64,000 nt of DNA, taken from assembly GCA_021613535.1 (NCBI GenBank), contig CP075494.1, forward strand, positions 1,674,001 through 1,738,000, written 5' to 3'. The notes beneath the pieces were generated by a model. The model was not told the origin of the DNA. It worked only from the letters and a program-made list of their open reading frames with translations, and ran no database searches. The DNA comes from Adineta vaga (lineage: Eukaryota > Animalia > Rotifera). Position 1 is the first letter of the stretch, and each line of letters begins with the position of its first letter. Of the stretch, positions 9,342 to 56,330 are shown in pieces. The translations under genes were made by a program, and so were the position numbers.

Positions 9342-10844
9342 TTACATTTCGTGGAAAAATTCACTAGTCAAAATTATGTATATTGAAGATTCAGTTTGTT
9401 TTCTTTGTTCTTCAAGAATATAAATTGACTTGAGATAATCATCATCATCATTGTATTCATCTTGACGAGCTTCCAACAATTCCATTCGATCACCAAATAC
9501 AGCCAACTGACGATCAATAAAATCATTATGTTTTGTATATAAAAAATGACGCCAAAATGGATTTTGTTGTATATAATCAATCAGTATATTTGGCATATTC
9601 TTTTCCTTTTCATTTTCAATATCTTTAACAGCTTGTTTAACTGCTTGTTCAGTTGCTTTCGATACACTCGAATAGGACATGACAATTGTATTGATTTCAA
9701 TAGGCATATTCAATGTATTATGTGGAGAAGTGTTGAAACCTAGAACAGTTTCGACAGATTCTGCTTCATCTAGCATTCAATTTCCATTTTGAATATGTAT
9801 TTGATTAAGATATTCCAAAGTTTTTTCTTGTAAACGATGAAAATGAAACATACGTTCGACATGAGAATAAATTTTTTCTTTGGATAAAATACCTTGATAA
9901 ACTTCTTCTTCTAAATATTTACATTCCATATCAAATACAGAAAATAAAATACGATTATGACATGTTGATATATGTTCTTCAGCACATGAAAAACAACGTT
10001 GTCGTAAACCTGAATCTTTAGTCATAGCATTTAATAAGCAAGTCAATCGTTGGGAAAAATATTCTCTTTGATGTAAAACCTCGCCAGCCAAAACAATAGC
10101 AGCAAGTTTATATAACCATATTTTAAAACACTCAGCATTGGTTTCTTCTTTAAATGAACACCATTTCTGAGCGAATATTTTAGAAAAATATTCAAACGGG
10201 ATAGACATCATATGTTCTTGTTGATCTAAATATCGACCAAGAGTTACTCGTGGAATAAACCATAGACTTTGTGGAAGTTGATCAACATCCAAAGGATTAC
10301 CGCTTAAAACCAACTCTCCTAAACATTCCAGATGTCCCAAATATTTAGGTACTGTTCTTAAAGAATTATTTGCTAGATTGAGCAATTCAAGTTTTATCAA
10401 TGATTGAAGTGAATCACCCAAATCTATCAATTGATTATCTGATATATTTATTAACCGTAATTTTTGTAGTGTCACAAGTTGTGAAGGAAATTCAGTGAAG
10501 TTATTACTTCCTAAATGTATGAATTCAAGCTTATGAAGTCGTACTATGGCAGCAGGTAATGTTTTTAATTGAAGATCTGATAGATCAAGACGTGTCTGAT
10601 CTTGTAAGAAATGATTTTCAAATCTTTCCATTGCCTCATCTTTGCGGAAGCCAACATCCCAAGAAGCTAAAACTTCTCGAAAATTTCCTAGATTAAGTGC
10701 TTCCAAATCGTCAATAAGTAACATGGATATCAGCTGAATATTAAGCGATGCAGGCGTATCAGTCAGATCTTCTATAGTGTTGTTGGGAATATCATCAGCT
10801 GGAATAATAGAAGAAGATGAACATGCAAAGAAATAACTTAACAT
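9342..10844 (-). pseudogene. LRR + NEL (IpaH/SspH-type novel E3 ligase) protein with one in-frame TGA at 9777-9779
   Basis: LRRs (LDLSDLQLKTLP, LNLANNSLRTVP), then NEL motifs W..F..E.NA..F..WL.KL, LRQRCF..AEE..STCHNR and, after the stop in the same frame, ESVETVL.F...LNMP...MSY..VS...FWRHFL. Confidence 0.75.
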
Positions 10845-11477: not shown

Positions 11478-12928
11478 TTATTGCTCCCGCCAGACACGCA
11501 GTTGTGGATTATAAAAAAGGTGTACGTCTTTTATCGAATCTGTTAATCGCGTTTGAAGTGTATACATCGGTTCATTGTAATTGCCTTGCCAATGCAAATC
11601 AATATAAACGTCCATGTTACCAGTACTATCATTGATCGGTATTTTATGTTCGATAGATTCTCGACCTGTGAGCTGTTTGGATTCGTATTTCGATAAAGTT
11701 CCTTGTCGAACTCGTATTCTTGCTCTCGAAAAAAGTGTATATGAAATGTCTTGATCAACATCGAGACCCATAATCGTAATTCTTTGTTTTTGAATGATAA
11801 CACGTACTCGTCGATGAAGCTCCCAGTCGGGTATAGAAATGTCTAATTTAGCCATCAATCCTCGCATAAGATCGTCGCATAAGGCGTGAATATTGAGTTG
11901 AGCTAATGGAGCTGATGAAGTCAATTGTAAATTGCCGATAGCTAATTTACCACCATGTTCACTGACTCTTTGTGGAACATACGCTGCTGGTGGAACGAGT
12001 ATTGAAGAGCCTAATACGAGACATACATCGGCTTTTTCTGCGTGTTCAAAACTTGTGTCGAATTCTTGTTGTGAAATACTCTCGCCAAAGTTAATGATCG
12101 AATCGTACAGTGTCGAACTACAATTGGTACATTTACGAGTTGTCTGATGATCGTGATCTTTGATGGCCGTTCGTGTTTGAAAATCACGAAAATATTTCGT
12201 ATGACAGTTCTTGCATATTTCCAAATTCGAATTACCATGAACCTCAGATATCAATGACAATGGCAAACCAGATCTTAGATGAAGCCCGTCGATATTTTGA
12301 GAAACAACAAAGTGCAGAAGATTTCGTCGAGCTAATTCGACTAGTGCCATATGTGTGACTGATGGAATTGCTTTTACTAAACTGACTGTACGAATCGTTG
12401 GAGAACGCTTAGCACCCGGATGATCACGAAGTTCCCACACACCTGGTCCGGTTGGTAGAATCGTATTCATACTGGATCGAAAGTCAGGAATACTATACAG
12501 AAAATTGAATAAATTATATTCGACACCATACTGGGGTGCAAAAAAGAAATAAAACACATTATCTTTATGAATTAGCAAAAGGAATTCACAATCGCATCAT
12601 GGATTCCTATGGACGTACAGGAAAATTTTCAGGAAGAGATATTTACCTATTTTTTAGTGCTTAACTCACTCCTTCTGAGTTTTCGATACAAGTCTATCAT
12701 GAGTTCTACTCACCCGGTAGATGTTGACACGCCGGCACCTATAATAATCACAATTTTAAAAATTACGTTCCGTTATTCGAAACCTTTCTTCGACTTACCA
12801 GTAAACACGATAAAATGCTTTGCATTACGAATCCACTCAGCCAATTGGTCAAGTTTCTGATCGAGAACGTCAGGTGGATCGATAATTTCTTTTTTTGTGG
12901 GATCTTCGTCTGCTATACTATATGCCAT
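11478..12928 (-). CDS. Class IV (SIRT6/7-like) NAD+-dependent sirtuin deacylase, 3 exons
   Basis: Spliced FTG|AGVSTSTG|IPDFRS...GPGVW, SQNIDGLH, EVHGN (catalytic His), CKNC/CTNC Zn ribbon, INFGE, LGSS, GNLQ. Confidence 0.88.
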
Positions 12929-13617: not shown

Positions 13618-14625
13618 TTAACAAAAAATGCGCATAAAAGTCCATTCGACACAAGCATGATCAAGTTTATTTGGATCGTATTGCAGAAGTCGATAGCCAC
13701 TTTGCCATAATTGGGAGAATAAGGACATATGCATAATGCTATGGTATATATCTCGATTCCACCAGTGAGACTCAAAAGATATCTGATATGGCAAGTTCTG
13801 GCTATTTTTGTTTGTCAATAAATCTCTGAATACCGAATATTCTCCACCTTCAATATCCATTTTCAAAACATGTACTTGTGTATGATTGTTTATCTTCAAT
13901 ATTTGTTCATAGTTCATATAGGTCAAGGTAGTCGAAAGCGGATTACCTGACATCTTCCCCGACTCTGGATAGATATAGCGTTGAATGGGTGAATTTTCAC
14001 CTAAACAAATTTTATAAAAACGTAGTCGGTCATATTCTTTTTGCGGAGGAGAACTTGTACAGTCAAAAGTGTACGCTAGGCATTTAGTTTGTCCTAAAAC
14101 CGATTCTTCAAATTGGAAATCATTCGCAGAGCCCAAGCTGTATACCGTACAAGAATCACTTGGAGATAGTACTTCTAAACCACAGATCCATTTTCCAGAG
14201 TCCACTGAAAGACCATAACGTTTCATCTGATTGTTATTATACGGACAGGGTAATAATTCATTGGTTGGATAGAGAATTTCGGGAAACTCTCTTTTCGTTT
14301 TATTAGGAGAGACAACGTATCTTTTGATAAAATCAAACGTTTTTGCAAATCCATCTTGCGTCCATATATAGTGTTTGTGTTCTAAATCTAAGACTAGTTG
14401 TTTTTTATAACCTATGAGGAAAGGATTCTTTTCACACCATTGAAGATCATTTGATATTGTCGTACGATTCTGCTTACTAAAGATGACATGTGAGTTAACT
14501 GAACACGTTTTGTTAGAATCAACAACATATATTTTATAGAAGTAAAGAATCAAGGAAAATACCGTCAGCTGAAGAAAAATCTTGATGTAGTTTTCATTGC
14601 GCATGAACAGGAAAGCCATCATCAC
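13618..14625 (-). CDS. Methyltransf_22/FkbM-like (METTL24-like) methyltransferase, type II membrane
   Basis: N-terminal TM; DSGKWICG, VYSLGS..DFQFE, TFDCT, VLKMDIEGGE, QISFE.H motifs; intronless. Confidence 0.85.
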   Translation of the reverse strand: MMMAFLFMRNENYIKIFLQLTVFSLILYFYKIYVVDSNKTCSVNSHVIFSKQNRTTISNDLQWCEKNPFLIGYKKQLVLDLEHKHYIWTQDGFAKTFDFIKRYVVSPNKTKREFPEILYPTNELLPCPYNNNQMKRYGLSVDSGKWICGLEVLSPSDSCTVYSLGSANDFQFEESVLGQTKCLAYTFDCTSSPPQKEYDRLRFYKICLGENSPIQRYIYPESGKMSGNPLSTTLTYMNYEQILKINNHTQVHVLKMDIEGGEYSVFRDLLTNKNSQNLPYQISFESHWWNRDIYHSIMHMSLFSQLWQSGYRLLQYDPNKLDHACVEWTFMRIFC

Positions 14626-18842: not shown

Positions 18843-19333
18843 TATAAAGGACAGTGTTTTCTTGGTTTCGATCATTCTCCCGAAAAAATTATATTTTACA
18901 ATACAAAACACGCCTCTGACTTTAACATTTATAACGCAATTGGAAACGGTAAGTTTCAAGAATTTTTATTTTTTTTAATTACATAGAAGAAAGTATACTT
19001 CTCATTTTAATACCCCGACGATTATTGCTAAGAAAATCCTAGAAAAAAAAAGACAAAAAGATTTCTACTTTTGGTCTCTATTCGATGTATGTGATTATTC
19101 TAAAGTTCCAGAAATTTAGAATAAATCAAGAGCAGTTTTTCTCTATAGGCATACGCTATTCTCATATTTTAAAACAGCAATAGACATATCGTTGTGAATG
19201 ATTTTGGATGGTGAAATTGATCACTCTTACTTTTCTTTTTTTCTCACTTACATACGATTTGCACTATTTTTCATACACAGAGAATATGTTGAATGATTTC
19301 ATATTTTGACTTTCTTTTTGTTTTCATTCATAG
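18843..19333 (+). promoter_or_regulatory. Putative TATA box and 5'UTR intron of the PDI-fusion gene
   Basis: TATAAAG at ~18843; donor CG|GTAAGT at ~18949; polypyrimidine tract plus CATAG acceptor at 19333, 22 nt before the ATG. Confidence 0.5.
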
Positions 19334-19355
19334 ATCATTCTATTGATTATTAAAA

Positions 19356-22300
19356 ATGTTTCCAGGCTCCGTACAAGGAGCACTTTTAGCTGTTGTTATT
19401 ATTCTTACTCAAACAACAGAAAGCCATGTTCTTTCATTAACGAAAGATACATTTGATGATGCTGTGAAGAATAATAGACATTTACTTGTTAAATTTGTTG
19501 CACCATGGTGTGATCATTGCAAAGCATTGTCACCAGCTTATGCCGCTGCTGCTAAGCAACTAGTGGATTCCGGTAGTGATATCAAATTAGCTAGTGTTGA
19601 TGCAACTATTGAACAAGATTTAGCACAAAAATATGATGTTAAAGTTTATCCAACAATCAAATTCCTTAGTGATGGTACAACATTTGACTATACTGGTGGA
19701 CGTGCACGAGATGATATTACTAGTTGGTTGAAGAAGAAAACATTTGTCATCCACCATTATCGAAGAAAAGCACTGAAAAAACGTACGACCACAGTTCTGG
19801 CCCCCTATGTTTATGATCTCGATCCACAAATTGTGATCCAGCAAAATGTGAATCAGAAAGGATTGGTTATTATGGAAGGAAAACTCACAAAACCTTTCAT
19901 AGATGACCATATAAAATTATCTATCAAGTACCAGGATGTACAGGGCAATTGGGTGACAGGATGGTGTAAAACACTTTATTCTTACAATCAATATAATGAA
20001 AATGTAAGAGCTACATTCGAGTTACCTGCATCGGCACTGAACCCTTACAATGTAAAGATCGAATTAAGTTCTAATACGAACCTTTCCAACTTCAACAGTG
20101 TTGTTTGGGACAAAACGATCAGACATTACAAATTAGGTGACTACATCGCTACAAATTGTGATCTAGACGAAAATGAATATACCATCCTTTTAACACCGAA
20201 AAAAGATGGTACTTTGATCACAGACACTAATGGAAAAGTTACAGGAGTAAAAGACAGGGTGACAACCGCCCATTCCTGGAACAGACTGAACATTGGATAT
20301 TCATTGGATAATAAAAAGAATGATGTAGTCTTCTCACCTACAAATCCAGCGACCTTGTTTACCGACACCAATGGTGCCAAATCCATTAAAATGGTCAATC
20401 AGGGAGTTATTAGTGACACTTTGGGTTCCACCCCTGAATTTATTTACAATGTAGGTCCGGGACATCCAATTCCGTATTTATATAGTTATGAAGATCCTGT
20501 ATATATGTTCGCGGGCAAATTTTCAGTAAACGGATTTTTCATAAAATTCAGTCAATGGCCCGGTGAACCAAATGGTCCAGGATATCATAATTTTAAAAAT
20601 CCTAACAGTCTTCAAAGTAGATATTTCAATTTATACAATACTATAAGTGAAAAGTTATCTGATTTTATCAGTGATCAGGAGCCAGTAGTATTTGTATCAA
20701 GTATGACTACAGGTTTCCGAGTTTATAAAAGTAATGGAACTTATATAAACCTTACAGGCTATAGCAACTATGGTCCGTTATATTTTGGATATGGTAATGA
20801 TCAGGGAGGCGGTCGTAGAGGACCCGGATCTGAAAACTTTATCGTTTCAAGTACTTCCGAAATGACATTATATGGAATGGGTGCATTACGAAATGACTTT
20901 GTGAATTTTACTCCGGGATACCCATCCATCCGATCAATGCAGGATATTGAAAAAGAAATCTCTAAATTCATCAGATATGCTGGCATCTTCGGAAATACCA
21001 CTGCTTATGATGACACTTCAGAATGTGCAGGCGGATGTTTTGCAGCAAATCCTGGGGCTGTTTCAGATTATGTGATGTTAGACTGGGCTAAAGCACCAAA
21101 CAGCTACATTTTCACAGGAAAAGATAAAAACGGAAATGATGCTGACGGTCTTTACATTCCTGTAAAAAAAGCTTATGAAATGTGGTCTAAAGGTGGTGAA
21201 TTCATGAGAGACGAAAACGGAAATTACACTCCTATTCCGTCTGGAACTGCTACAGCTGGTTTGTATTGGGAGGATGAACCCGGTTTGATCAAGTCTATTA
21301 CTTTACAAGGAACAGGTGAAAATGCTAAGATTAAAGTCTTAGTTAATAAACTTAAAGAAGGAAATGCCGTAGTATCTTATCGAGTAGATGATAAAGTTTA
21401 CTGGACTTGGCACGTTTGGGTAACAGATGATCCAACCGTGAATGGTAGTACTTACCGTCTGGGTTTCGAGAAAGATAAAAATGGAAATCCTGTTACAAAC
21501 TGGAAATGGATGGACAGAAATCTAGGTGCAACAAGTGCAAAATTCTTAGGTAACAACTGGCATAAATCTCAAGGGTTACAATATCAATGGGGAAGAAAAG
21601 ATCCATTCCCTGCTCTTATACATAAGGACGGAACGATGTATGAGATTTCTGGAGAAATTGGTAACATTAGATACGTAGGAGCTGTTTATACCACAGGATC
21701 AACTTCTGCATTACCGGTAAAATACAGAGGAAACTTATACCCACAAGACAATACGGGATATGACACTCCGAGCGGAAATATTCGTTATTCTGTTCAGCAT
21801 CCGATCCACATGATCATTCCGCCACTCTATGTCAAGAAATATAATGAAACGGTGATTGATAACGATGAAAACATGTTTGTTCAAAACAGTGCTAATTCAT
21901 GGTATCATCAACAACGAACAACATGGTTCTCTAAACAGAAATACAGAAATGATTTCAACAGTGCCGATCCTTCACAGAACGTTGCATGGGATCTTTGGGG
22001 TGACACTCGTGGTGGCAAGATAAGTGACCTAAATAACCCTCAATTAGCAGAAGAAAGTAAGCGCTACGCAATGAAATCTCCTTATGACCCTTGTCCGTGT
22101 AACTGGAGAGTACCATCATTCTATGATAATGTTGGCAGTCCTAACAATGACAATAACGCTTCACCTTGGGGAAGAATTGGAGGCGCGAATGATGTGGACA
22201 CCTTTACTTCTAATCCTTCAACATCAAGTACAAGATTCCCTGGAATTAAGATATATCCCGGTTTAGGATATGATTTTACAGGCGTTGCAGGTCGTAATTT

Positions 22301-24350
22301 AGGATTAATTCCAATTAATGGAAATTATGAGTATTATCCTAATTATGTTACAATTAGAAGTATAAATACTTCAGGATTAGTATCACCTAAAATTGTGTAT
22401 CAAGATGGTTCATCTGATGGTGCATTAGGTTCTTCTACCTTCTCAGTGGGCGCAGCTGGTGGTGGACCTTGGTATGGACCGAGAGGACTTGGTTATATTT
22501 CAGACCCAGGAAATGTTCAAGAAACTGCCAATAATTTTGGATTGTATACTATGAACTCTGTTTCACATGATGGAAACACACACGAAACAGGTGGAATCAG
22601 ATGTATTATGGACCCGAATAATGCTTATATGCCAACTGATTTTGAAACTGAATTTATTAGCAGCCCAAATGAACAATACGCATTATCTACTCTAATTAAT
22701 TGGATAAAAGAACCAAACAGCTATGTAGAGTATACTAACAACTCTTTGACTACACAAAATCCGGCAGATAAAGACCGTGTTATTGAAATTCCGTTGCGTA
22801 AAGCTTATGCAATGTATAAACTACATTTAAGCACAACAGATGAATATCCTCAGGGAAGTCTCAAATCGAGCTCTGTTGTATGGACTACCAATACAGGCTT
22901 AATTCAAAACATGGAAATAATCGATGGAACTAAGGAAACGGCTAAACTGAAAGTTACTTTAAATGAAAATCAATACGGTAATGCTGTGGTAGCTTTCCAT
23001 TTAGGGAATTCCGGTCAGTGGGTAAATGGAAAAATGCAGGATCCCATTATCTGGAGCTGGCATATCTGGACTCCTGAAACAATAGTTGGTTCATTAGATT
23101 ACGAAACTGAAACCTCAACGAATGGGGGTATTATAAATGCTTCTAATACAGCTTTTGTAAATCCTGTGAAAAGTATTGGCGTTCCATTGAAGACTACTTT
23201 CATGGATCGAGACTTGGGTGCTTTAATGATGTTCCCAGAAGAAGCTTCAGTGGGTGGTGCATCATATACTTACAGCTTCATCCCTCAAGTCAGTAAAAGT
23301 GGAGGGCTACATTTCCAGTGGGGAAGAAAAGACCCTCTTCCTGTTTTCATCAATGCCGGAGGACATTATGATTTCGGAACTGCAGTAGGAAGTCAAGGAA
23401 GTATTTATAAGAATATGGCCAGATATACAGTCCGTACTCAGAGCGGACCGATGAGCAATGGAATAATTCCTTATTTAGGAACAATCGACAGTACAAGTTA
23501 TACTACAAATTATGCTAAAGAATTTTCAACCGATTATTCTTCAGTATTTTCATCAGCAGATTCTAAGAAGGATAAAATCAAGAAAGTATTGATGTATTCT
23601 GTAAACAATCCGCTATACTTTTTATATCAAAATCCTTCTACAGAAACAAATCAGTTTAAAAAAGTACGAGATTGGGTATCTGATGAAAATGGCCAGTTTA
23701 CAGACAGATGGGGACACGGTACAGAAAAATCACCTTTTGATCCATGTCCTGAAGGATGGAGAATACCTGATGCTTTCTATGCAAACATGCACTCTACACT
23801 GCCTCAGTTGAGCAATTTCTATTCTAACTGGCCATTATCTCATGGAAACAATCCTTGGTATTATAATGGTTATCAGGCTTCAGGTACAGGAACATACGGA
23901 TTAGCACCTTCAGGTGTATACCAAGCTAAAAGAGATGCTTATTCACCTGCAAACAAATTCTATCCGGGAAGCAGATCTATAATTTCTAACTATCCTGCCA
24001 CCAGATTTGGGTTTGTTTTCAATAACAACAGATATAAAATTGGTAACTATGCCAACAATGGAATCAGAGGCTTTCAAGGAGGAAAAGATCTTACCTTAGT
24101 TACAGCTGATGGACCTCTTAGATTAAGATTCAGCATGTCCGGAGCATGGACTGCATCGCCTTCCGATGTTTATTCTGGAACAGCGATAGGATTACATTTC
24201 AACATAGAATCATCAGCTGAGTTTAATATGCAGACCGGATATCCGTATTATCCTCAGGCAGCAATGTCTTGCCGTTGTGCAAAAATCAAGTATGATGGAA
24301 ATGGAAAGGAAATAGGAAGATACGAACCTACAGGCATTGAAGTTCAATAA
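19356..24350 (+). CDS. Chimeric secreted protein: signal peptide + PDI-a thioredoxin domain + polybasic linker + Bacteroidetes-type fimbrial/FISUMP-like surface protein with two tandem modules
   Basis: aa ~24-129 VLSLTKDTFD..VKFVAPWCDHCKAL..VDAT..YPTIKF..YTGGR..I.SWLKKKT. Then two copies of PNSY / IP..KAY.M / GNAVV / W.WH.W / MDR.LGA / G..QWGRKDP / KSP.DPCP..WR.P. Confidence 0.85.
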   Translation: MFPGSVQGALLAVVIILTQTTESHVLSLTKDTFDDAVKNNRHLLVKFVAPWCDHCKALSPAYAAAAKQLVDSGSDIKLASVDATIEQDLAQKYDVKVYPTIKFLSDGTTFDYTGGRARDDITSWLKKKTFVIHHYRRKALKKRTTTVLAPYVYDLDPQIVIQQNVNQKGLVIMEGKLTKPFIDDHIKLSIKYQDVQGNWVTGWCKTLYSYNQYNENVRATFELPASALNPYNVKIELSSNTNLSNFNSVVWDKTIRHYKLGDYIATNCDLDENEYTILLTPKKDGTLITDTNGKVTGVKDRVTTAHSWNRLNIGYSLDNKKNDVVFSPTNPATLFTDTNGAKSIKMVNQGVISDTLGSTPEFIYNVGPGHPIPYLYSYEDPVYMFAGKFSVNGFFIKFSQWPGEPNGPGYHNFKNPNSLQSRYFNLYNTISEKLSDFISDQEPVVFVSSMTTGFRVYKSNGTYINLTGYSNYGPLYFGYGNDQGGGRRGPGSENFIVSSTSEMTLYGMGALRNDFVNFTPGYPSIRSMQDIEKEISKFIRYAGIFGNTTAYDDTSECAGGCFAANPGAVSDYVMLDWAKAPNSYIFTGKDKNGNDADGLYIPVKKAYEMWSKGGEFMRDENGNYTPIPSGTATAGLYWEDEPGLIKSITLQGTGENAKIKVLVNKLKEGNAVVSYRVDDKVYWTWHVWVTDDPTVNGSTYRLGFEKDKNGNPVTNWKWMDRNLGATSAKFLGNNWHKSQGLQYQWGRKDPFPALIHKDGTMYEISGEIGNIRYVGAVYTTGSTSALPVKYRGNLYPQDNTGYDTPSGNIRYSVQHPIHMIIPPLYVKKYNETVIDNDENMFVQNSANSWYHQQRTTWFSKQKYRNDFNSADPSQNVAWDLWGDTRGGKISDLNNPQLAEESKRYAMKSPYDPCPCNWRVPSFYDNVGSPNNDNNASPWGRIGGANDVDTFTSNPSTSSTRFPGIKIYPGLGYDFTGVAGRNLGLIPINGNYEYYPNYVTIRSINTSGLVSPKIVYQDGSSDGALGSSTFSVGAAGGGPWYGPRGLGYISDPGNVQETANNFGLYTMNSVSHDGNTHETGGIRCIMDPNNAYMPTDFETEFISSPNEQYALSTLINWIKEPNSYVEYTNNSLTTQNPADKDRVIEIPLRKAYAMYKLHLSTTDEYPQGSLKSSSVVWTTNTGLIQNMEIIDGTKETAKLKVTLNENQYGNAVVAFHLGNSGQWVNGKMQDPIIWSWHIWTPETIVGSLDYETETSTNGGIINASNTAFVNPVKSIGVPLKTTFMDRDLGALMMFPEEASVGGASYTYSFIPQVSKSGGLHFQWGRKDPLPVFINAGGHYDFGTAVGSQGSIYKNMARYTVRTQSGPMSNGIIPYLGTIDSTSYTTNYAKEFSTDYSSVFSSADSKKDKIKKVLMYSVNNPLYFLYQNPSTETNQFKKVRDWVSDENGQFTDRWGHGTEKSPFDPCPEGWRIPDAFYANMHSTLPQLSNFYSNWPLSHGNNPWYYNGYQASGTGTYGLAPSGVYQAKRDAYSPANKFYPGSRSIISNYPATRFGFVFNNNRYKIGNYANNGIRGFQGGKDLTLVTADGPLRLRFSMSGAWTASPSDVYSGTAIGLHFNIESSAEFNMQTGYPYYPQAAMSCRCAKIKYDGNGKEIGRYEPTGIEVQ

Positions 24351-25095
24351 AATACAACTACAAATTCATGAAATGTTCTTCCCAGCTAGAAACAAAAATG
24401 GTCTGAGACGCAACAATTAAAATAATAAAAAACTGTCATAAAAAACCCTAAACAATGCATTTTCATTTTCCGTTTTAATATCTAAATAAAAGTTATAATG
24501 CGAATTATTCCTTACTATTGTTTAAGGTTTTTTCAATACCAGATTATTAATAATTTCCAGATATTTATTTGTCCACGAAAAGATAGAATGAATTATAAGA
24601 TGTATCCATATGGAAGAGGGTGTAATAAATTCGAGATTATCTAGTAATAGATCTGTACCTCCGTGTGTCTGAACAGTTCATTGAGAAGAGACTTTTTTCG
24701 GAATATATGAGGTCCAATCTTCTTAGTTTAATGCCGAAAGCGATTGACACGAAAGAATTTTTTAAAGCATGCTAGTCTACTACGCTTCAATATCTTTGGA
24801 TGTAAAGCAAGTAAGAATAGAATATACTGATCATTTTCGAAATAGATTTAATTGAAATAGTTGACATTAAATTGTTCAATAATACTTCATGCAACTACTA
24901 AAATAAGCGACTAACAACTGCAATGAAAACATAGAAATACAAAAAAATTTATATGCTACGAAAGCAATTATTTAACGAAGATTGAAGTTAATGATCGAAT
25001 GTATATTTTCCAGATAATTCACTCTTTTGATACGTTTGTGCATTAGGCGAATCGATTTCTTCTGTATTATTCACTTGTTTTGCTTGTTGAACTTC

Positions 25096-26100: not shown

Positions 26101-28391
26101 TTAACCCTTTCAGGACGGGAAGCCACTATAGTGGCTTTTGATTGTTTTTGAATAGAAAAACGGTATTCATTGACGATCTAAATTAGCTATATATGTATCA
26201 TAATATACTTATTATAATGACATATATCTTATGTAGTTTTCGTGGTCGGTCATGCTGATTCCTCTTTTTTTTTGTCTTACATCAGATCATCAGAGTGAGT
26301 TGTAGATGTGGTCATCATTTGTATGTCATCTTTTTCTGTCTATCATTTTCATATCATTAACACATATACATATATATGTATGTATATATATATACTCTCT
26401 CTTACCCTCACTTTTTTTCGTTCTGCTACCGCACTTGAATTCGTATACATTCTTTTATTCTGGTATATTCCAATACGCACTTCTTTCATTTATCTTCTGG
26501 ATGTTTCTCTCTCTTTTTGGACCCTGATGTTTATATGTATACGTTCACTATTTGAAACTTTTTTATTCATTGACTAGTAACCAATAGTTCTCTCAAACGT
26601 TAAATTAGAAAAGTATTGAATATTCTCACTTATTTCATCTCATTTACTGTTTCTTATCGAAGAAAACATGGCTGCATTCAAGTGTAAGCAAAATACAGAA
26701 GTGAATGAAACTCGTATGAACATCGAATCCGACAGTGACAGCGAGTTTTTCGATGATCTCAGCAGTGAAGAATCGGATAATGACGATTATACATCTGTAC
26801 CGAATAGATCTTGGAGAGATGGGCATTTTACACCTCGTCTATTTGACTTTACACAAAAAACTGGTCTCAATTCGGATGTATTAGACTTGAAAAATGAATC
26901 TCCATTAGATTTTTTTGAACTATTATTCGATCGAACAATATTAGAACAAATAGTGAATGAAACAAATAAATATCATTCACTTTCAAACACAAGTATTCCA
27001 AATTCCTCCACATCTCATCAGACACAATGGAATGATACAAACGTTCCTGAGTTGTATTCTTTTCTAGCCATCGTAATGCTTATGGCTCATACGAAAAAGA
27101 ATCGGATAAAAGACTACTGGTCTACCGATGAGCTGATTTCTACTCCAATCTTTACTCAAATATTCACCAGAGATCGCTTTTTGTTAATTCTGAAATTTTT
27201 ACATTTCAACGATAATCAACGACAGCAAGATGGTGATAGATTACATAAGATAAAGCCAATTATTGATTATTTGAGAAAAAAAGTTCAAACTTTGTTTCAA
27301 ACCATACAGAAACCTATGTATTGATGAAAGCTTGATGTTATGGAAAGGACGTTTGAGTTTCAAACAGTATATACCAACAAAACGACATCGTTTTGGTGTG
27401 AAATTATTCATATTGTGCGATTGTCATTCCGGTTTCATTATGGATTTTATTGTTTATGCGGGTCAACAGACAGAAATTAAACTGGACAAAGAATTACGAA
27501 TATCGGGTTCGATTGTTATGACTCTGATGGATAACTATTTGGACAAAGGTCATGTTATATTCATGGATAATTGGTATACAAGTCCCATTCTATTCGAAAA
27601 ACTACACTACAGACGAACAGGTGCTTGTGGAACCGTCAAATCCAACAGAACTGGTCTGCCTATATTTCCTTCGAAATTACAAAAAGATAAACAAGCATTT
27701 CAACATACAAATATATTACTTGCATTGAAATGGCGTGATAAGCGCGATGTTCACATGTTATCTACAATCCATGTACCAGATATGGTACTAACTAATAAAA
27801 TTGATCATACAACGAATAAACCAGTAGCAAAACCTCTTTGTATCAAGGATTACAACGAGAATATGGGATTAGTGGATAAATCTGATATGCAGATTAGCTT
27901 TTCAGAATGTATTCGTAAAACTATCAAATGGTACAAGAAGTTATTTTTTCATCTACTCGATTTATCGATGCTAAATGCTTACATACTTTATAAAGAAAAG
28001 AAGCACGTAATTCTTGAGTTCACTGATTTTCGTCTACAAGTAATTCGACAGATCTTCGAAAAATATGGTACTCAACGAAATACAAGAAGAGGTCGACCAT
28101 CTGCTGACATATCATTGCGACTCACAACTCGTCATTTTCCATCGCTAACTGGTGGAAGATCGCGAACATGCATTGTGTGCAGTACGACTAGCAAACGACC
28201 CAAAAAGCGTTCTCGTACAAAGTATGAATGTTCAGACTGTAATGTAGGTTTATGTATCGCAAATTGTTTTCGAGAATATCATACATTACACTCATATTAA
28301 TAAACTTGAAGAAAGAAAAGAATAAATTGATGTTTAGTTATATTTTTCATATGATTTCCTATAAAAAATAATCCCGTCCTGAAAGGGTTAA
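26101..28391 (+). mobile_element. Full-length piggyBac transposon with TTAA TSDs and perfect 16-bp TIRs
   Basis: TTAA-CCCTTTCAGGACGGGA (TIR 26105-26120) ... TCCCGTCCTGAAAGGG-TTAA (TIR 28372-28387); subterminal palindrome AAGCCACTATAGTGGCTT. Confidence 0.95.
26668..28300 (+). pseudogene. piggyBac (PGBD4-like) DDD transposase with a single frameshift
   Basis: IDESL, MDNWY, VDKSD catalytic motifs and a C-terminal Cys-rich domain. One extra A in the A-run at ~27276-27282 separates the two ORFs. Confidence 0.9.
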
Positions 28392-53787: not shown

Positions 53788-56330
53788 ATGATTAAGATGG
53801 CTGTTGATACTCCTGTAGATGAAGAACGACGAAATCGGCTTCCCATTGAAATCGATGAGAATAAAGAAACTGTTCAATTGATTTGGCTCAATGAGAATTC
53901 TAATGATTTGTCCGATAATTCATTCATTCATTCTATACTACTTGAACTCAACCCAGCAGTTCAATTCTATTCAGATTTCGATCGATGTATTAATTTAATT
54001 AAATCGATCAAAAATGAACAAATCTTTCTTATTGTTTCACACAATTTTGCGCAACGTATTCTGACAAAAATCTCTACTCATCGAAATCTTGTTTCTATCT
54101 TCATTTTTCCTGCTAATAATAAACAGCAGGAAGCATTAGTAGACGACTTTGATAAAGTCGTTGGTATTTTTACTGATCAAAATCATTTATTAGAATCGAT
54201 ACGAATGACAATGGATACAATTGAAGGAAAAACATTAATATTCAATCTTTTTAATCAAAAACAAAGATTTGGACGAGATTTATCAAAAGAATCAGCTTCA
54301 TTTGTTTGGCATCAGATGTTAATCTATATTCTAAGACAAATGCCACAAGATCAACAATCAAAAGATGAAATGCTCGATATATGTCGAAACTTTTATCGTT
54401 ATAATAGACGAGAATTAGAAAAAATTGAATTATTTCGATTAACTTATACAAGTGATAAAGCCATTGAATGGTATACAAAAGATTGTTTTCTATATAAATT
54501 ATTAAACAAGGCACTTCGTACAGAAGATATCGAATTACTTCATCTATTTCGATTCTTTATTATTGATTTATGCTCAGCACTTGAAAAAGAATGTCTTCAA
54601 TTAAAAAATCAAACTAATCTTATTACATATCGTGGAACACAAATTCTTAATGAACAACTTGAAATATTGAAACAAAGCGAAGGAAAAATTATTTCAATGA
54701 ATGGATTTTTCTCTACTTCTCGTGATATTAAAGTTTCACTTGTTTTCGCAGGACAAAGTCAACCAGAAGCTATTTTTCAATCAGTTCTCTTTGAAATTAA
54801 AATTGATCCATCATCAACAGCAGTAGTTTTTGCTGATATTGAACGTGAAAGTCGAATAAAAAGTGAAGAAGAAGTTCTTTTCAGTCTGAATACTGTTTTT
54901 AAAATTGAATTCGTTGGATTTGATTCAGAATTAAATATTTGGAAAATCAAATTAATTACTACAAATGAAGGTACAGAAAAAATTCAAGAATATATAAAAT
55001 CAATAGAGCAACGTCTAGATGAATATCCACCAATAATTTATTTTGGTCGACTTTTAATCAAAGATTTAGGTCAAATTAATCGTGCTGAAAAATATTTTGA
55101 AATGTTACTTAAAACACTTCCATCTAATCATGAACATATATCAGCTGTTTATAATCAAATTGGAAATATTCATGATCGGAGAGGAAATCTTAATCTAGCA
55201 TTAAAATATTTCGAATTAGCTTATCAAACTGGTCAAAAACAATTAACTCAAAATTTTCAACACTTTGCTGGTTCTCTTAATAATATTGGACGGATTCATA
55301 GAAATAAAGGAAATTTTAATCAAGCACTTAATTATTATAATCAAGCATTAGATATCGAAACGAAATATTGTTCAGATGATCATATACATAAAGCGGTTTT
55401 AATTGAAAGTATTGCAGTAATATATGCTGATAATAATCATTTTGAAAAAGCTTTTAATCTTATGGATGAATCTTTGAAGATGTTAAGACGACTTTTACCT
55501 GCACAACATCATTATATTGCTCTATGTTTTGGGTATATTGGATATATTTATGAAAAAAAGGTGATTTTAATCAAGCATTGAATTATTATTATCAATTATT
55601 GGAAATGAATGAACAATGTTTACCATCAGATCATCCTGAATTGTCGACAAATCTTAATATGATCATCGAAATTTATAAGAAAATAGGTCAAACTGAAAAA
55701 GCTTTGAATTTTTGTCGAACAACATTGGATAAACAAAGAAAAACACTTGGTGATATTCATTCTTCTATTGCTGAAACATTGATTAGTATGGGAAATATTC
55801 TTATAGAAGAAAAAGTAAATGAATCATTCAATTATTTTAAAGAAGCTTTATCAATTCTTGAACAATTAAGATCATCTGATACTCTATTAATTTCGCAATG
55901 TCTTACATGGATAAGTTGTATCTATTGGAAACGTAATATGATCGATGATGCATTACAAAATCAACTTCGAGCATTGAATCTCAATTGTCAAAAACTGTCA
56001 AACGATCATCCAAAAATTGCTAATAATCTTAGAAATATTGGTATATTTTATCGACAAATAAATGATCTATCGGGAGCACTTCGTTATTTTAATGAAAGTC
56101 TTTCGATTTATCAAGTCTATTATAGATCAGATCACGAAGATGTGAGAAGAATTCAGAAAGATATTGCTGAATTGAATAAAGATTTCGTGTTAAATATGGT
56201 AACTGATTCAACAATATTACAGTATACAAAAGAAAAGATTCCAAGAACCTTGGTCACTACTGTCATTAACGACTGTCGACGACCATATATTATCATGTAT
56301 ACAATTGAATTACACAATATTAAACTTTAA
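53788..56330 (+). CDS. ADP-ribosyltransferase (R-S-E clade) + TPR protein with one frameshift at ~55553-55560
   Basis: WYT...LY..LNKALR, TYRG, FFSTS, EEEVL, then TPRs. Adding one A to the A-run restores EKKGDFNQALNYY. Confidence 0.85.

Follow-up and report, generated by a model that had tools for sequence, protein, structure and literature searches.

Joining of a host protein disulfide isomerase 5' end to a surface protein gene of likely Chryseobacterium origin in the bdelloid rotifer Adineta vaga

A single uninterrupted open reading frame (ORF) of 1664 aa occupies positions 19356-24350 of the forward strand in the stretch of Adineta vaga DNA analysed here, 64,000 nucleotides corresponding to C5:1674001-1738000 and hereafter called the window. 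The A. vaga genome spans 100.8 Mb in six contigs, and the ORF is the sole large one in a neighbourhood of about 10 kb. It encodes, in order, the signal peptide of a host protein disulfide isomerase (PDI), one thioredoxin a-domain, a 22-aa linker and a cargo of 1.5 kaa. The features of the ORF and its flanks lie on the same strand. The signal peptide (about aa 1-21; 19356..19418) matches the N-terminus of a host PDI, has a hydrophobic core at aa 6-17 with a Kyte-Doolittle maximum of 2.85 over residues 8-18, and is probably cleaved around aa 21. The a-domain (aa 25-127; 19428..19736) carries its active-site tetrapeptide at 19509..19520 and ends at WLKKKT (nt 19742). The linker follows (aa 130-151; 19743..19808). 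The cargo includes an N-terminal region (19803..21101) and two repeat units (21102..22760 and 22761..24347) of the same two-domain kind, which are 28% identical to each other (E 4e-19). Unit 1 carries, in its larger domain, the motifs W.WH.W, MDRNLGA, QWGRKDP and DPCP..WR.P. The stop codon is at 24348..24350. The ORF, the a-domain running to WLKKKT, the linker and the cargo motifs are all present as quoted in an original prediction made without database searches, and the cargo is GC-richer, as noted there. GC content at third codon positions is 0.17 in the PDI part, 0.15-0.17 in host genes, 0.29 in the cargo and 0.33 in the Chryseobacterium homologue. The codon composition of the cargo is intermediate between those of the bacterial gene and of host genes, and partly host-like.

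Residues 25-127 match the Pfam family Thioredoxin (PF00085) with E 4e-26 and 91 bits (cut-off 23.5), and the score obtained with the NCBIfam model pdi_dom (TIGR01126), 108.1 bits, lies above the cut-off of 107.2. The model ER_PDI_fam (TIGR01130) reaches 145 bits against a cut-off of 344, and matches at profile positions 2-108 alone. The a-b-b'-a' architecture and the retention signal of classical PDIs of the endoplasmic reticulum (ER) are lacking in the window protein, which has an a domain alone and a C-terminus that is not KDEL-like. A complete PDI a-domain, as had been proposed, is supported by the profiles; what had been missed is that the active site reads CDHC and not CGHC. The catalytic CGHC motif is absent both from the window ORF and from an orthologue, L023, described below, which also reads CDHC.

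A genome-wide search with aa 1-143 led to a gene located at C5:7228389-7228814 (81% identity), 5.5 Mb distant on the same chromosome (C5:7.23 Mb). Further matches correspond to an older duplicate of this gene on C2, and to distant genes of the PDI family. The a-domain is 82% identical at the aa level to the product of the C5 gene, a classical PDI which carries CGHC. DNA homology to this locus (L007) extends, at 77% identity, from 19175 to 19742, hence from 181 bp upstream of the ATG to the exact end of WLKKKT. Past this point the parent gene continues into a normal b domain, with b'-a' exons further on. Since the homology covers the upstream flank, and the parent continues as a normal PDI, the front end is a partial copy of a classical host PDI gene, duplicated at the DNA level. 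The flank, co-duplicated with the 5' untranslated region (19175..19355), presumably includes the promoter and possibly a splice-leader acceptor, and is conserved also in L023 and in the A. ricciae locus L021. A conserved site resembling an acceptor lies about 25 nt ahead of the ATG. That a host ER-entry module was fused in front of a foreign gene, a central point of the original prediction, is supported, and the parent gene of this module resides in the same genome. That the PDI part may be a retrocopy was considered and rejected, as L023 retains intron 1 of the PDI gene.

The cargo has a different ancestry. Residues 144-1664 align at 100% coverage (E = 0, 62-66% identity) to Chryseobacterium proteins of 1633-1665 aa described as type IX secretion system (T9SS) type A sorting domain-containing proteins. 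Among rotifers, A. ricciae, A. steineri, Rotaria socialis, R. magnacalcarata and others possess relatives 82-91% identical to the cargo. Maximum-likelihood analysis of 44 bacterial and 10 rotifer sequences placed the rotifer copies in a single clade (SH-aLRT 100) within Chryseobacterium, which indicates that the gene was acquired in one horizontal transfer from a Chryseobacterium-like bacterium. The predicted Bacteroidota origin of the cargo is borne out. The bacterial proteins (for example P0006 from C. carnipullorum and P0008 from C. shigense) are colinear with the rotifer protein over the mature region, and feature the same two repeat units and motifs. In contrast to them, the rotifer gene lacks the bacterial signal peptide and the sorting domain Por_Secre_tail, and has a eukaryotic leader and partly host-like codons.

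The loss of the sorting domain left traces. Bacterial homologues extend about 90 aa beyond the rotifer stop codon, through a linker into Por_Secre_tail (PF18962), a domain present in the bacterial kin, for which no Pfam match is found in the window ORF. In tblastn searches bacterial C-termini continue through the window stop with 39-49% identity, and delineate in the 3' flank (24351..24449) a decayed, stop-interrupted relic of the linker preceding the C-terminal domain, and of the start of this domain. The E values of the read-through alignments, down to 4e-21, refer to the whole alignment including the conserved coding end from 24204, and the best match to a window stretch without the relic has E 3e-24. 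L021 of A. ricciae shows the relic more clearly than the window does. Since a relic of the sorting domain persists after the rotifer stop codon, the direction of the transfer is fixed. Among rotifers the ratio of non-synonymous to synonymous substitution rates (dN/dS) of the cargo lies between 0.08 and 0.18 (0.18 against the closest relative, 0.08 against distant ones) at dS values of 0.27 to about 1.0, and the cargo is under strong purifying selection. The relationships among rotifer copies deviate from taxonomy, as the A. steineri copy groups with Rotaria, apart from A. vaga and A. ricciae. The non-taxonomic tree and the 82-91% identity across genera suggest old paralogy and very slow protein evolution.

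How host and foreign parts came together can be followed at orthologous loci. Two contigs labelled Rotaria sp. Silwood1 (L023 and L024; GCA_905250055.1 and GCA_905331515.1, 8-9 kb in length) host an orthologue with a cargo 90% identical to that of the window. The PDI-derived part of L023 is longer, and includes the upstream flank, exon 1, a 58-nt intron 1 and exon 2. The match to the parent breaks off 6 nt into parent intron 2, which marks the original junction in this ancestral-like form. From there the reading frame continues across the former splice donor, GTAAGA, into once-bacterial sequence. Once spliced at intron 1, the L023 locus encodes an intact protein of 1806 aa, made of the signal peptide, the a domain, part of the b domain, the linker and the cargo. 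The window copy corresponds to this structure minus 415 bp, that is 119 codons and the intron. The two blocks of the window/L023 alignment overlap by four nucleotides, AACA (19739..19742), the scar of a deletion at a microhomology, which removed PDI intron 1 along with the partial b domain. The window ORF is intronless because this deletion took out the intron. Upstream flank and signal peptide are common to the window and the A. ricciae copy (L021); the latter jumps at an ATGT microhomology from 12 residues past the signal peptide directly into the cargo, and has no thioredoxin domain. It carries one frameshift.

These data are very probably best accounted for by a host/foreign chimeric gene, formed by a single bacterial acquisition, replacement of the 5' end by that of a PDI gene, and later trimming at microhomologies, with the thioredoxin domain as a hitch-hiker. 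According to this scenario, a bdelloid ancestor would have acquired once the gene for a Chryseobacterium-type surface protein of about 1650 aa, exported in bacteria by the T9SS. Bacterial export signals would be useless in an animal cell. The C-terminal sorting domain would have been removed by a stop codon, and be decaying in the 3' flank. In the A. vaga/A. ricciae lineage, the bacterial signal peptide would have given way to a fragment from the start of a duplicated host PDI gene, reaching from the upstream flank through signal peptide, a domain and intron 1 into the b domain, part of which it included. The join would have occurred 6 nt into PDI intron 2, the old splice donor being since then translated in frame. 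Deletions at 4-nt microhomologies would later have shortened the PDI part, leaving in the window copy, upon loss of the 415 bp, an intronless ORF, and in A. ricciae the signal peptide plus 12 aa. Of the PDI part, selection may retain the promoter together with the ER signal peptide; the thioredoxin domain may stay in frame just because the cargo lies downstream.

The role of the thioredoxin domain is the point where this scenario departs from the original prediction, in which the domain was a functional tag followed by a protease site. As a working folding aid in cis, or a pro-domain, it would be released by a kexin/furin-type protease at the RR/KKR residues of the linker. In support of this hypothesis, window and L023 both have an intact a-domain frame with the two cysteines (CDHC), and a stretch of 11 positions in the window linker has acquired four basic residues relative to L023 (GG to RR, S to K, S to R). 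Yet, linker residues, located between WLKKKT and the first conserved block of the cargo, align to the segment which follows the signal peptide in Chryseobacterium proteins, and an equivalent segment is retained in Rotaria and metagenome copies. A conserved dibasic site was not found: RR and KKR occur in the window alone, L023 has GG and SKS, and Rotaria and metagenome copies lack such residues. The linker is the former mature N-terminus of the bacterial protein and not a designed protease site, because it aligns to this N-terminus and RR/KKR are lacking in the orthologue. The furin site consensus includes an arginine at P4, and KKR lacks it. The a-domain itself evolves in a near-neutral manner. 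Window and L023 differ in this domain by 15.5 non-synonymous and 6.5 synonymous changes (dN/dS 0.62), a ratio compatible with neutrality (binomial p 0.44), and exceeding that of the cargo, 0.18, in the same pair (Fisher p 0.008). Moreover, part of the b domain has been deleted in the window copy, and the whole PDI body in A. ricciae, with the cargo still constrained. Near-neutral evolution and these losses make a passenger the simplest reading of the thioredoxin domain, on the present comparison of sequences. With just 10 cysteines among its 1521 aa, the cargo has no obvious need for a dedicated oxidoreductase. A folding aid or pro-domain at work in the present protein is accordingly held to be unlikely.

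That the ORF is an evolutionary leftover, a recent chimera unexpressed or no longer useful, is more improbable still. The notion is fed by the fate of a paralogue on C3, located at C3:18033796-18038499 on the reverse strand (L019 796-5499), which is 90% identical in DNA sequence to the window copy and broken by three frameshifts and two TGA stops, by the frameshift in A. ricciae, and by the thin RNA support of the window gene. It is opposed by the uninterrupted frame of 1664 aa, by the dN/dS values of the cargo against both close and distant relatives, and by contigs from a run guessed to be RNA. These low-depth contigs, located on either side of the junction (19383-19541, 20295-20483 and 21106-21266), are 98-100% identical to the window copy, hence do not derive from the parent PDI gene, and make transcription of the fusion gene likely on the evidence of this one run. 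The C3 paralogue is annotated as a 1445-aa protein (I4U23_016605), a model which takes an unrelated upstream N-terminus and omits the broken parts. An artificial join made in assembly, or a cargo contributed by contaminating bacteria, is hardly credible. The gene sits within a contig of chromosome scale, and its flanks contain animal-type genes and a piggyBac-like transposase. At least five studies produced DNA runs containing the stretch, two DNA runs cover every bin of the window with mapped contigs, and one contig of an independent run (X6) spans 19615-19871, thus crossing the junction. The sole loose end, at 19807, is explained by the own upstream sequence of the C3 paralogue. The same PDI-to-cargo join is found in independent rotifer assemblies (L023, L024, L021), and these results together exclude the assembly artefact which the original prediction had envisaged as a pitfall. 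Both bacterial signals are missing from the cargo, which differs by 34-38% from its counterpart in any bacterium.

Several observations weigh against the chimera with a hitch-hiking thioredoxin domain, at least in part. The neutrality test on the a-domain is weak, being based on just 22 substitutions in 106 codons. The domain shows no visible breakage, and both active-site cysteines and an open frame are maintained in two lineages. Given the survival of the catalytic cysteines and the small sample, a residual thioredoxin function is possible. Expression is barely documented, as the probable RNA run has no contig across 19676-19869, and hence none over the junction. Secretion and binding function, discussed below, are deduced from sequence features and structural models. 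Finally, the species label of L023 and L024 is doubtful. In the tree both contigs join A. vaga and A. ricciae, their dS to the window is just 0.27, compared to about 1.0 for the A. steineri copy and an unlabelled metagenome copy, and their PDI part is nearest to the A. vaga parent. The contigs behave like an Adineta, and probably derive from an Adineta present in the Silwood1 sample, or are mislabelled.

As to the function of the cargo, hints come from predicted folds. Its 1520 residues have no Pfam family, and comparison of the cargo sequence with solved structures yielded nothing meaningful. AlphaFold2 (AF2) models were built from 44-sequence alignments. Residues 150-582 are modelled with a predicted local distance difference test (pLDDT) score of 86.5 as a beta-sandwich, followed by a concanavalin-A-like lectin jelly roll. 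In VIA comparisons about 200 residues of this region align, with Z 9-13, to lectin-type domains of glycosidases, tailspikes and ER lectins. The repeat unit (pLDDT 85.5) is composed of an Ig-like domain (Z 5-6.4) and a larger domain. In a Foldseek search of unit 1 against the PDB, matches were of the generic Ig-like type alone. In the ESM Atlas the larger domain resembles DUF8290 (TM score 0.69), and fimbrillin, DUF4906 and FISUMP (0.51-0.55, the FISUMP value being 0.51), with predictions on both sides of the comparison, and weakly resembles the C-terminal domain of the Legionella protein Lcl (PDB 8q4e, Z 4.9). No match of the window protein to FISUMP/Fib_succ_major models (PF09603, TIGR02145) was found at E <= 0.1; a bacterial relative has a sub-threshold FISUMP match (E 0.0096). 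The assignment of the cargo motifs to FISUMP-like proteins is therefore reasonable at the fold level (TM 0.51-0.69), and finds no significant profile match. The prediction-based likeness of the repeat unit to Bacteroidota DUF8290, FISUMP and DUF4906 ends of fimbrillin-like proteins, and to Lcl, backs the notion of a binding module just loosely, as these domains have no known function. The bacterial homologue resides in a polysaccharide-synthesis cluster, a neighbourhood which provides no lead on function. The product should leave the ER and be secreted, because a host signal peptide is present and no KDEL-type retention signal is found. It may be a secreted, multivalent, glycan- or ligand-binding protein, resembling multi-lectin adhesins.

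The linker and the PDI front end had been viewed also as a possible 'domestication cassette', reusable for unrelated foreign genes. A second cassette is missing in the A. vaga genome, where aa 1-143 find the ORF itself, the parent, its C2 duplicate and distant PDI-family genes, and where no second copy of the linker DNA exists. Among public proteins of 915-2912 aa, the size range covered by the search (cargos of 250-915 aa in other species fall outside it), the front end is found on the same cargo alone. The search for other cargos having retrieved none, the gene is clearly a one-off fusion, the verdict which the original prediction itself had set for a cassette occurring once.

The same cargo is preceded by different leaders in other copies. 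In A. steineri the leader is made of a signal peptide and an EGF-like module, the nearest A. vaga match of which is a host locus with 68% identity. The A. vaga C3 copy and its relatives have a short spliced leader exon, in which no DNA homology to PDI was detected. In R. socialis (L027 3900-4130) and in a metagenome copy (L022 100-300) an in-frame relic of the bacterial signal peptide is kept directly after a polypyrimidine/AG acceptor-like site, and the bacterial ATG is lost. One may speculate, as a rather doubtful possibility, that leader swapping is the norm for this gene, the PDI fragment (A. vaga/A. ricciae), the signal peptide plus EGF-like module (A. steineri) and the short spliced exon (C3-type copies) being independent captures, and that the A. 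vaga thioredoxin domain and newly polybasic linker are turning into a cleavable pro-domain. If true, bdelloids would provide a natural series for the re-addressing of a bacterial secreted protein to the animal secretory pathway.

The surroundings of the fusion gene are of mixed nature. Animal-type neighbours encode a Kelch protein and a 7TM/LDLa/EGF receptor-like protein; other ORFs nearby encode a piggyBac-like transposase and several domains typical of foreign bdelloid genes. About 9 kb upstream, on the reverse strand, an ORF (9777-10844) encodes leucine-rich repeats and, after these, an E3 ligase domain of the NEL type (Pfam NEL, E 2.3e-10), an architecture otherwise typical of effectors injected by bacteria. 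Between the NEL gene and the fusion, on the same reverse strand, two intron-free ORFs (11478-12578 and 13618-14625) encode a Sir2 domain and a FkbM-type methyltransferase domain, respectively. The NEL/Sir2/FkbM region looks like a cluster of candidate foreign genes. The piggyBac-like transposase (26668-28300, forward strand), featuring DDE_Tnp_1_7 and a zinc finger, is split in two adjacent ORFs 2.3 kb downstream of the fusion; in A. ricciae a Helitron (L021 12726-16654) follows the orthologous gene. Further downstream (53788-55581, forward strand) resides a gene for an ADP-ribosyltransferase with tetratricopeptide repeats, and a gene of the same kind adjoins the A. steineri cargo copy (L025 1-245). 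The shared genes may reflect loose synteny, or merely membership of a large gene family.

The A. vaga gene can be set beside known systems. With classical ER PDIs (a-b-b'-a', CGHC, KDEL), as the parent on C5, it shares the signal peptide, the a-domain and the upstream flank; in contrast to them, its product has an a domain alone with CDHC, has no b, b' and a' domains and no retention signal, and its a-domain is under relaxed constraint. No paper describing a PDI/cargo fusion was found in the literature. Animal genes fused with horizontally acquired fragments have been described in arthropods, where 104 such chimeras are known (PMC13389597). As in the A. vaga gene, intervals of animal and bacterial ancestry coexist in these in a single ORF, and in at least one published case the animal-derived part provides an N-terminal signal peptide (PMC13389597). 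A. vaga is a bdelloid, outside the range of that survey, and the foreign part makes up nearly the entire mature protein of 1.5 kaa (compare PMC13389597). In the A. vaga gene the foreign interval falls within the donor clade, the host interval has a parent gene, and both parts reside on one molecule. In contrast to the arthropod chimeras, the path leading to it can be read stepwise, from the read-through of an intron donor to two nested deletions at microhomologies and the relic of a sorting domain. The gene is a well-resolved host/foreign chimera of a kind already known, and the resolution is unusual.

Bdelloid rotifers are the animal champions of foreign-gene uptake, and the presence of foreign genes in their genomes is well known. 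To our knowledge, few cases show how a bacterial gene gets rewired for an animal cell. At this locus nearly every step has left a trace, and one can recognise the donor clade, the sorting domain that was discarded, the host gene that served as parent, the intron junction and the two nested deletions, by which the host domain would have been progressively reduced to a signal peptide. The attractive idea of a reusable cassette does not hold for the A. vaga fusion. What the gene offers is a testable model, according to which the apparent scarce resource for an incoming bacterial gene would be the capture of a promoter and a signal peptide, and passenger domains would erode.

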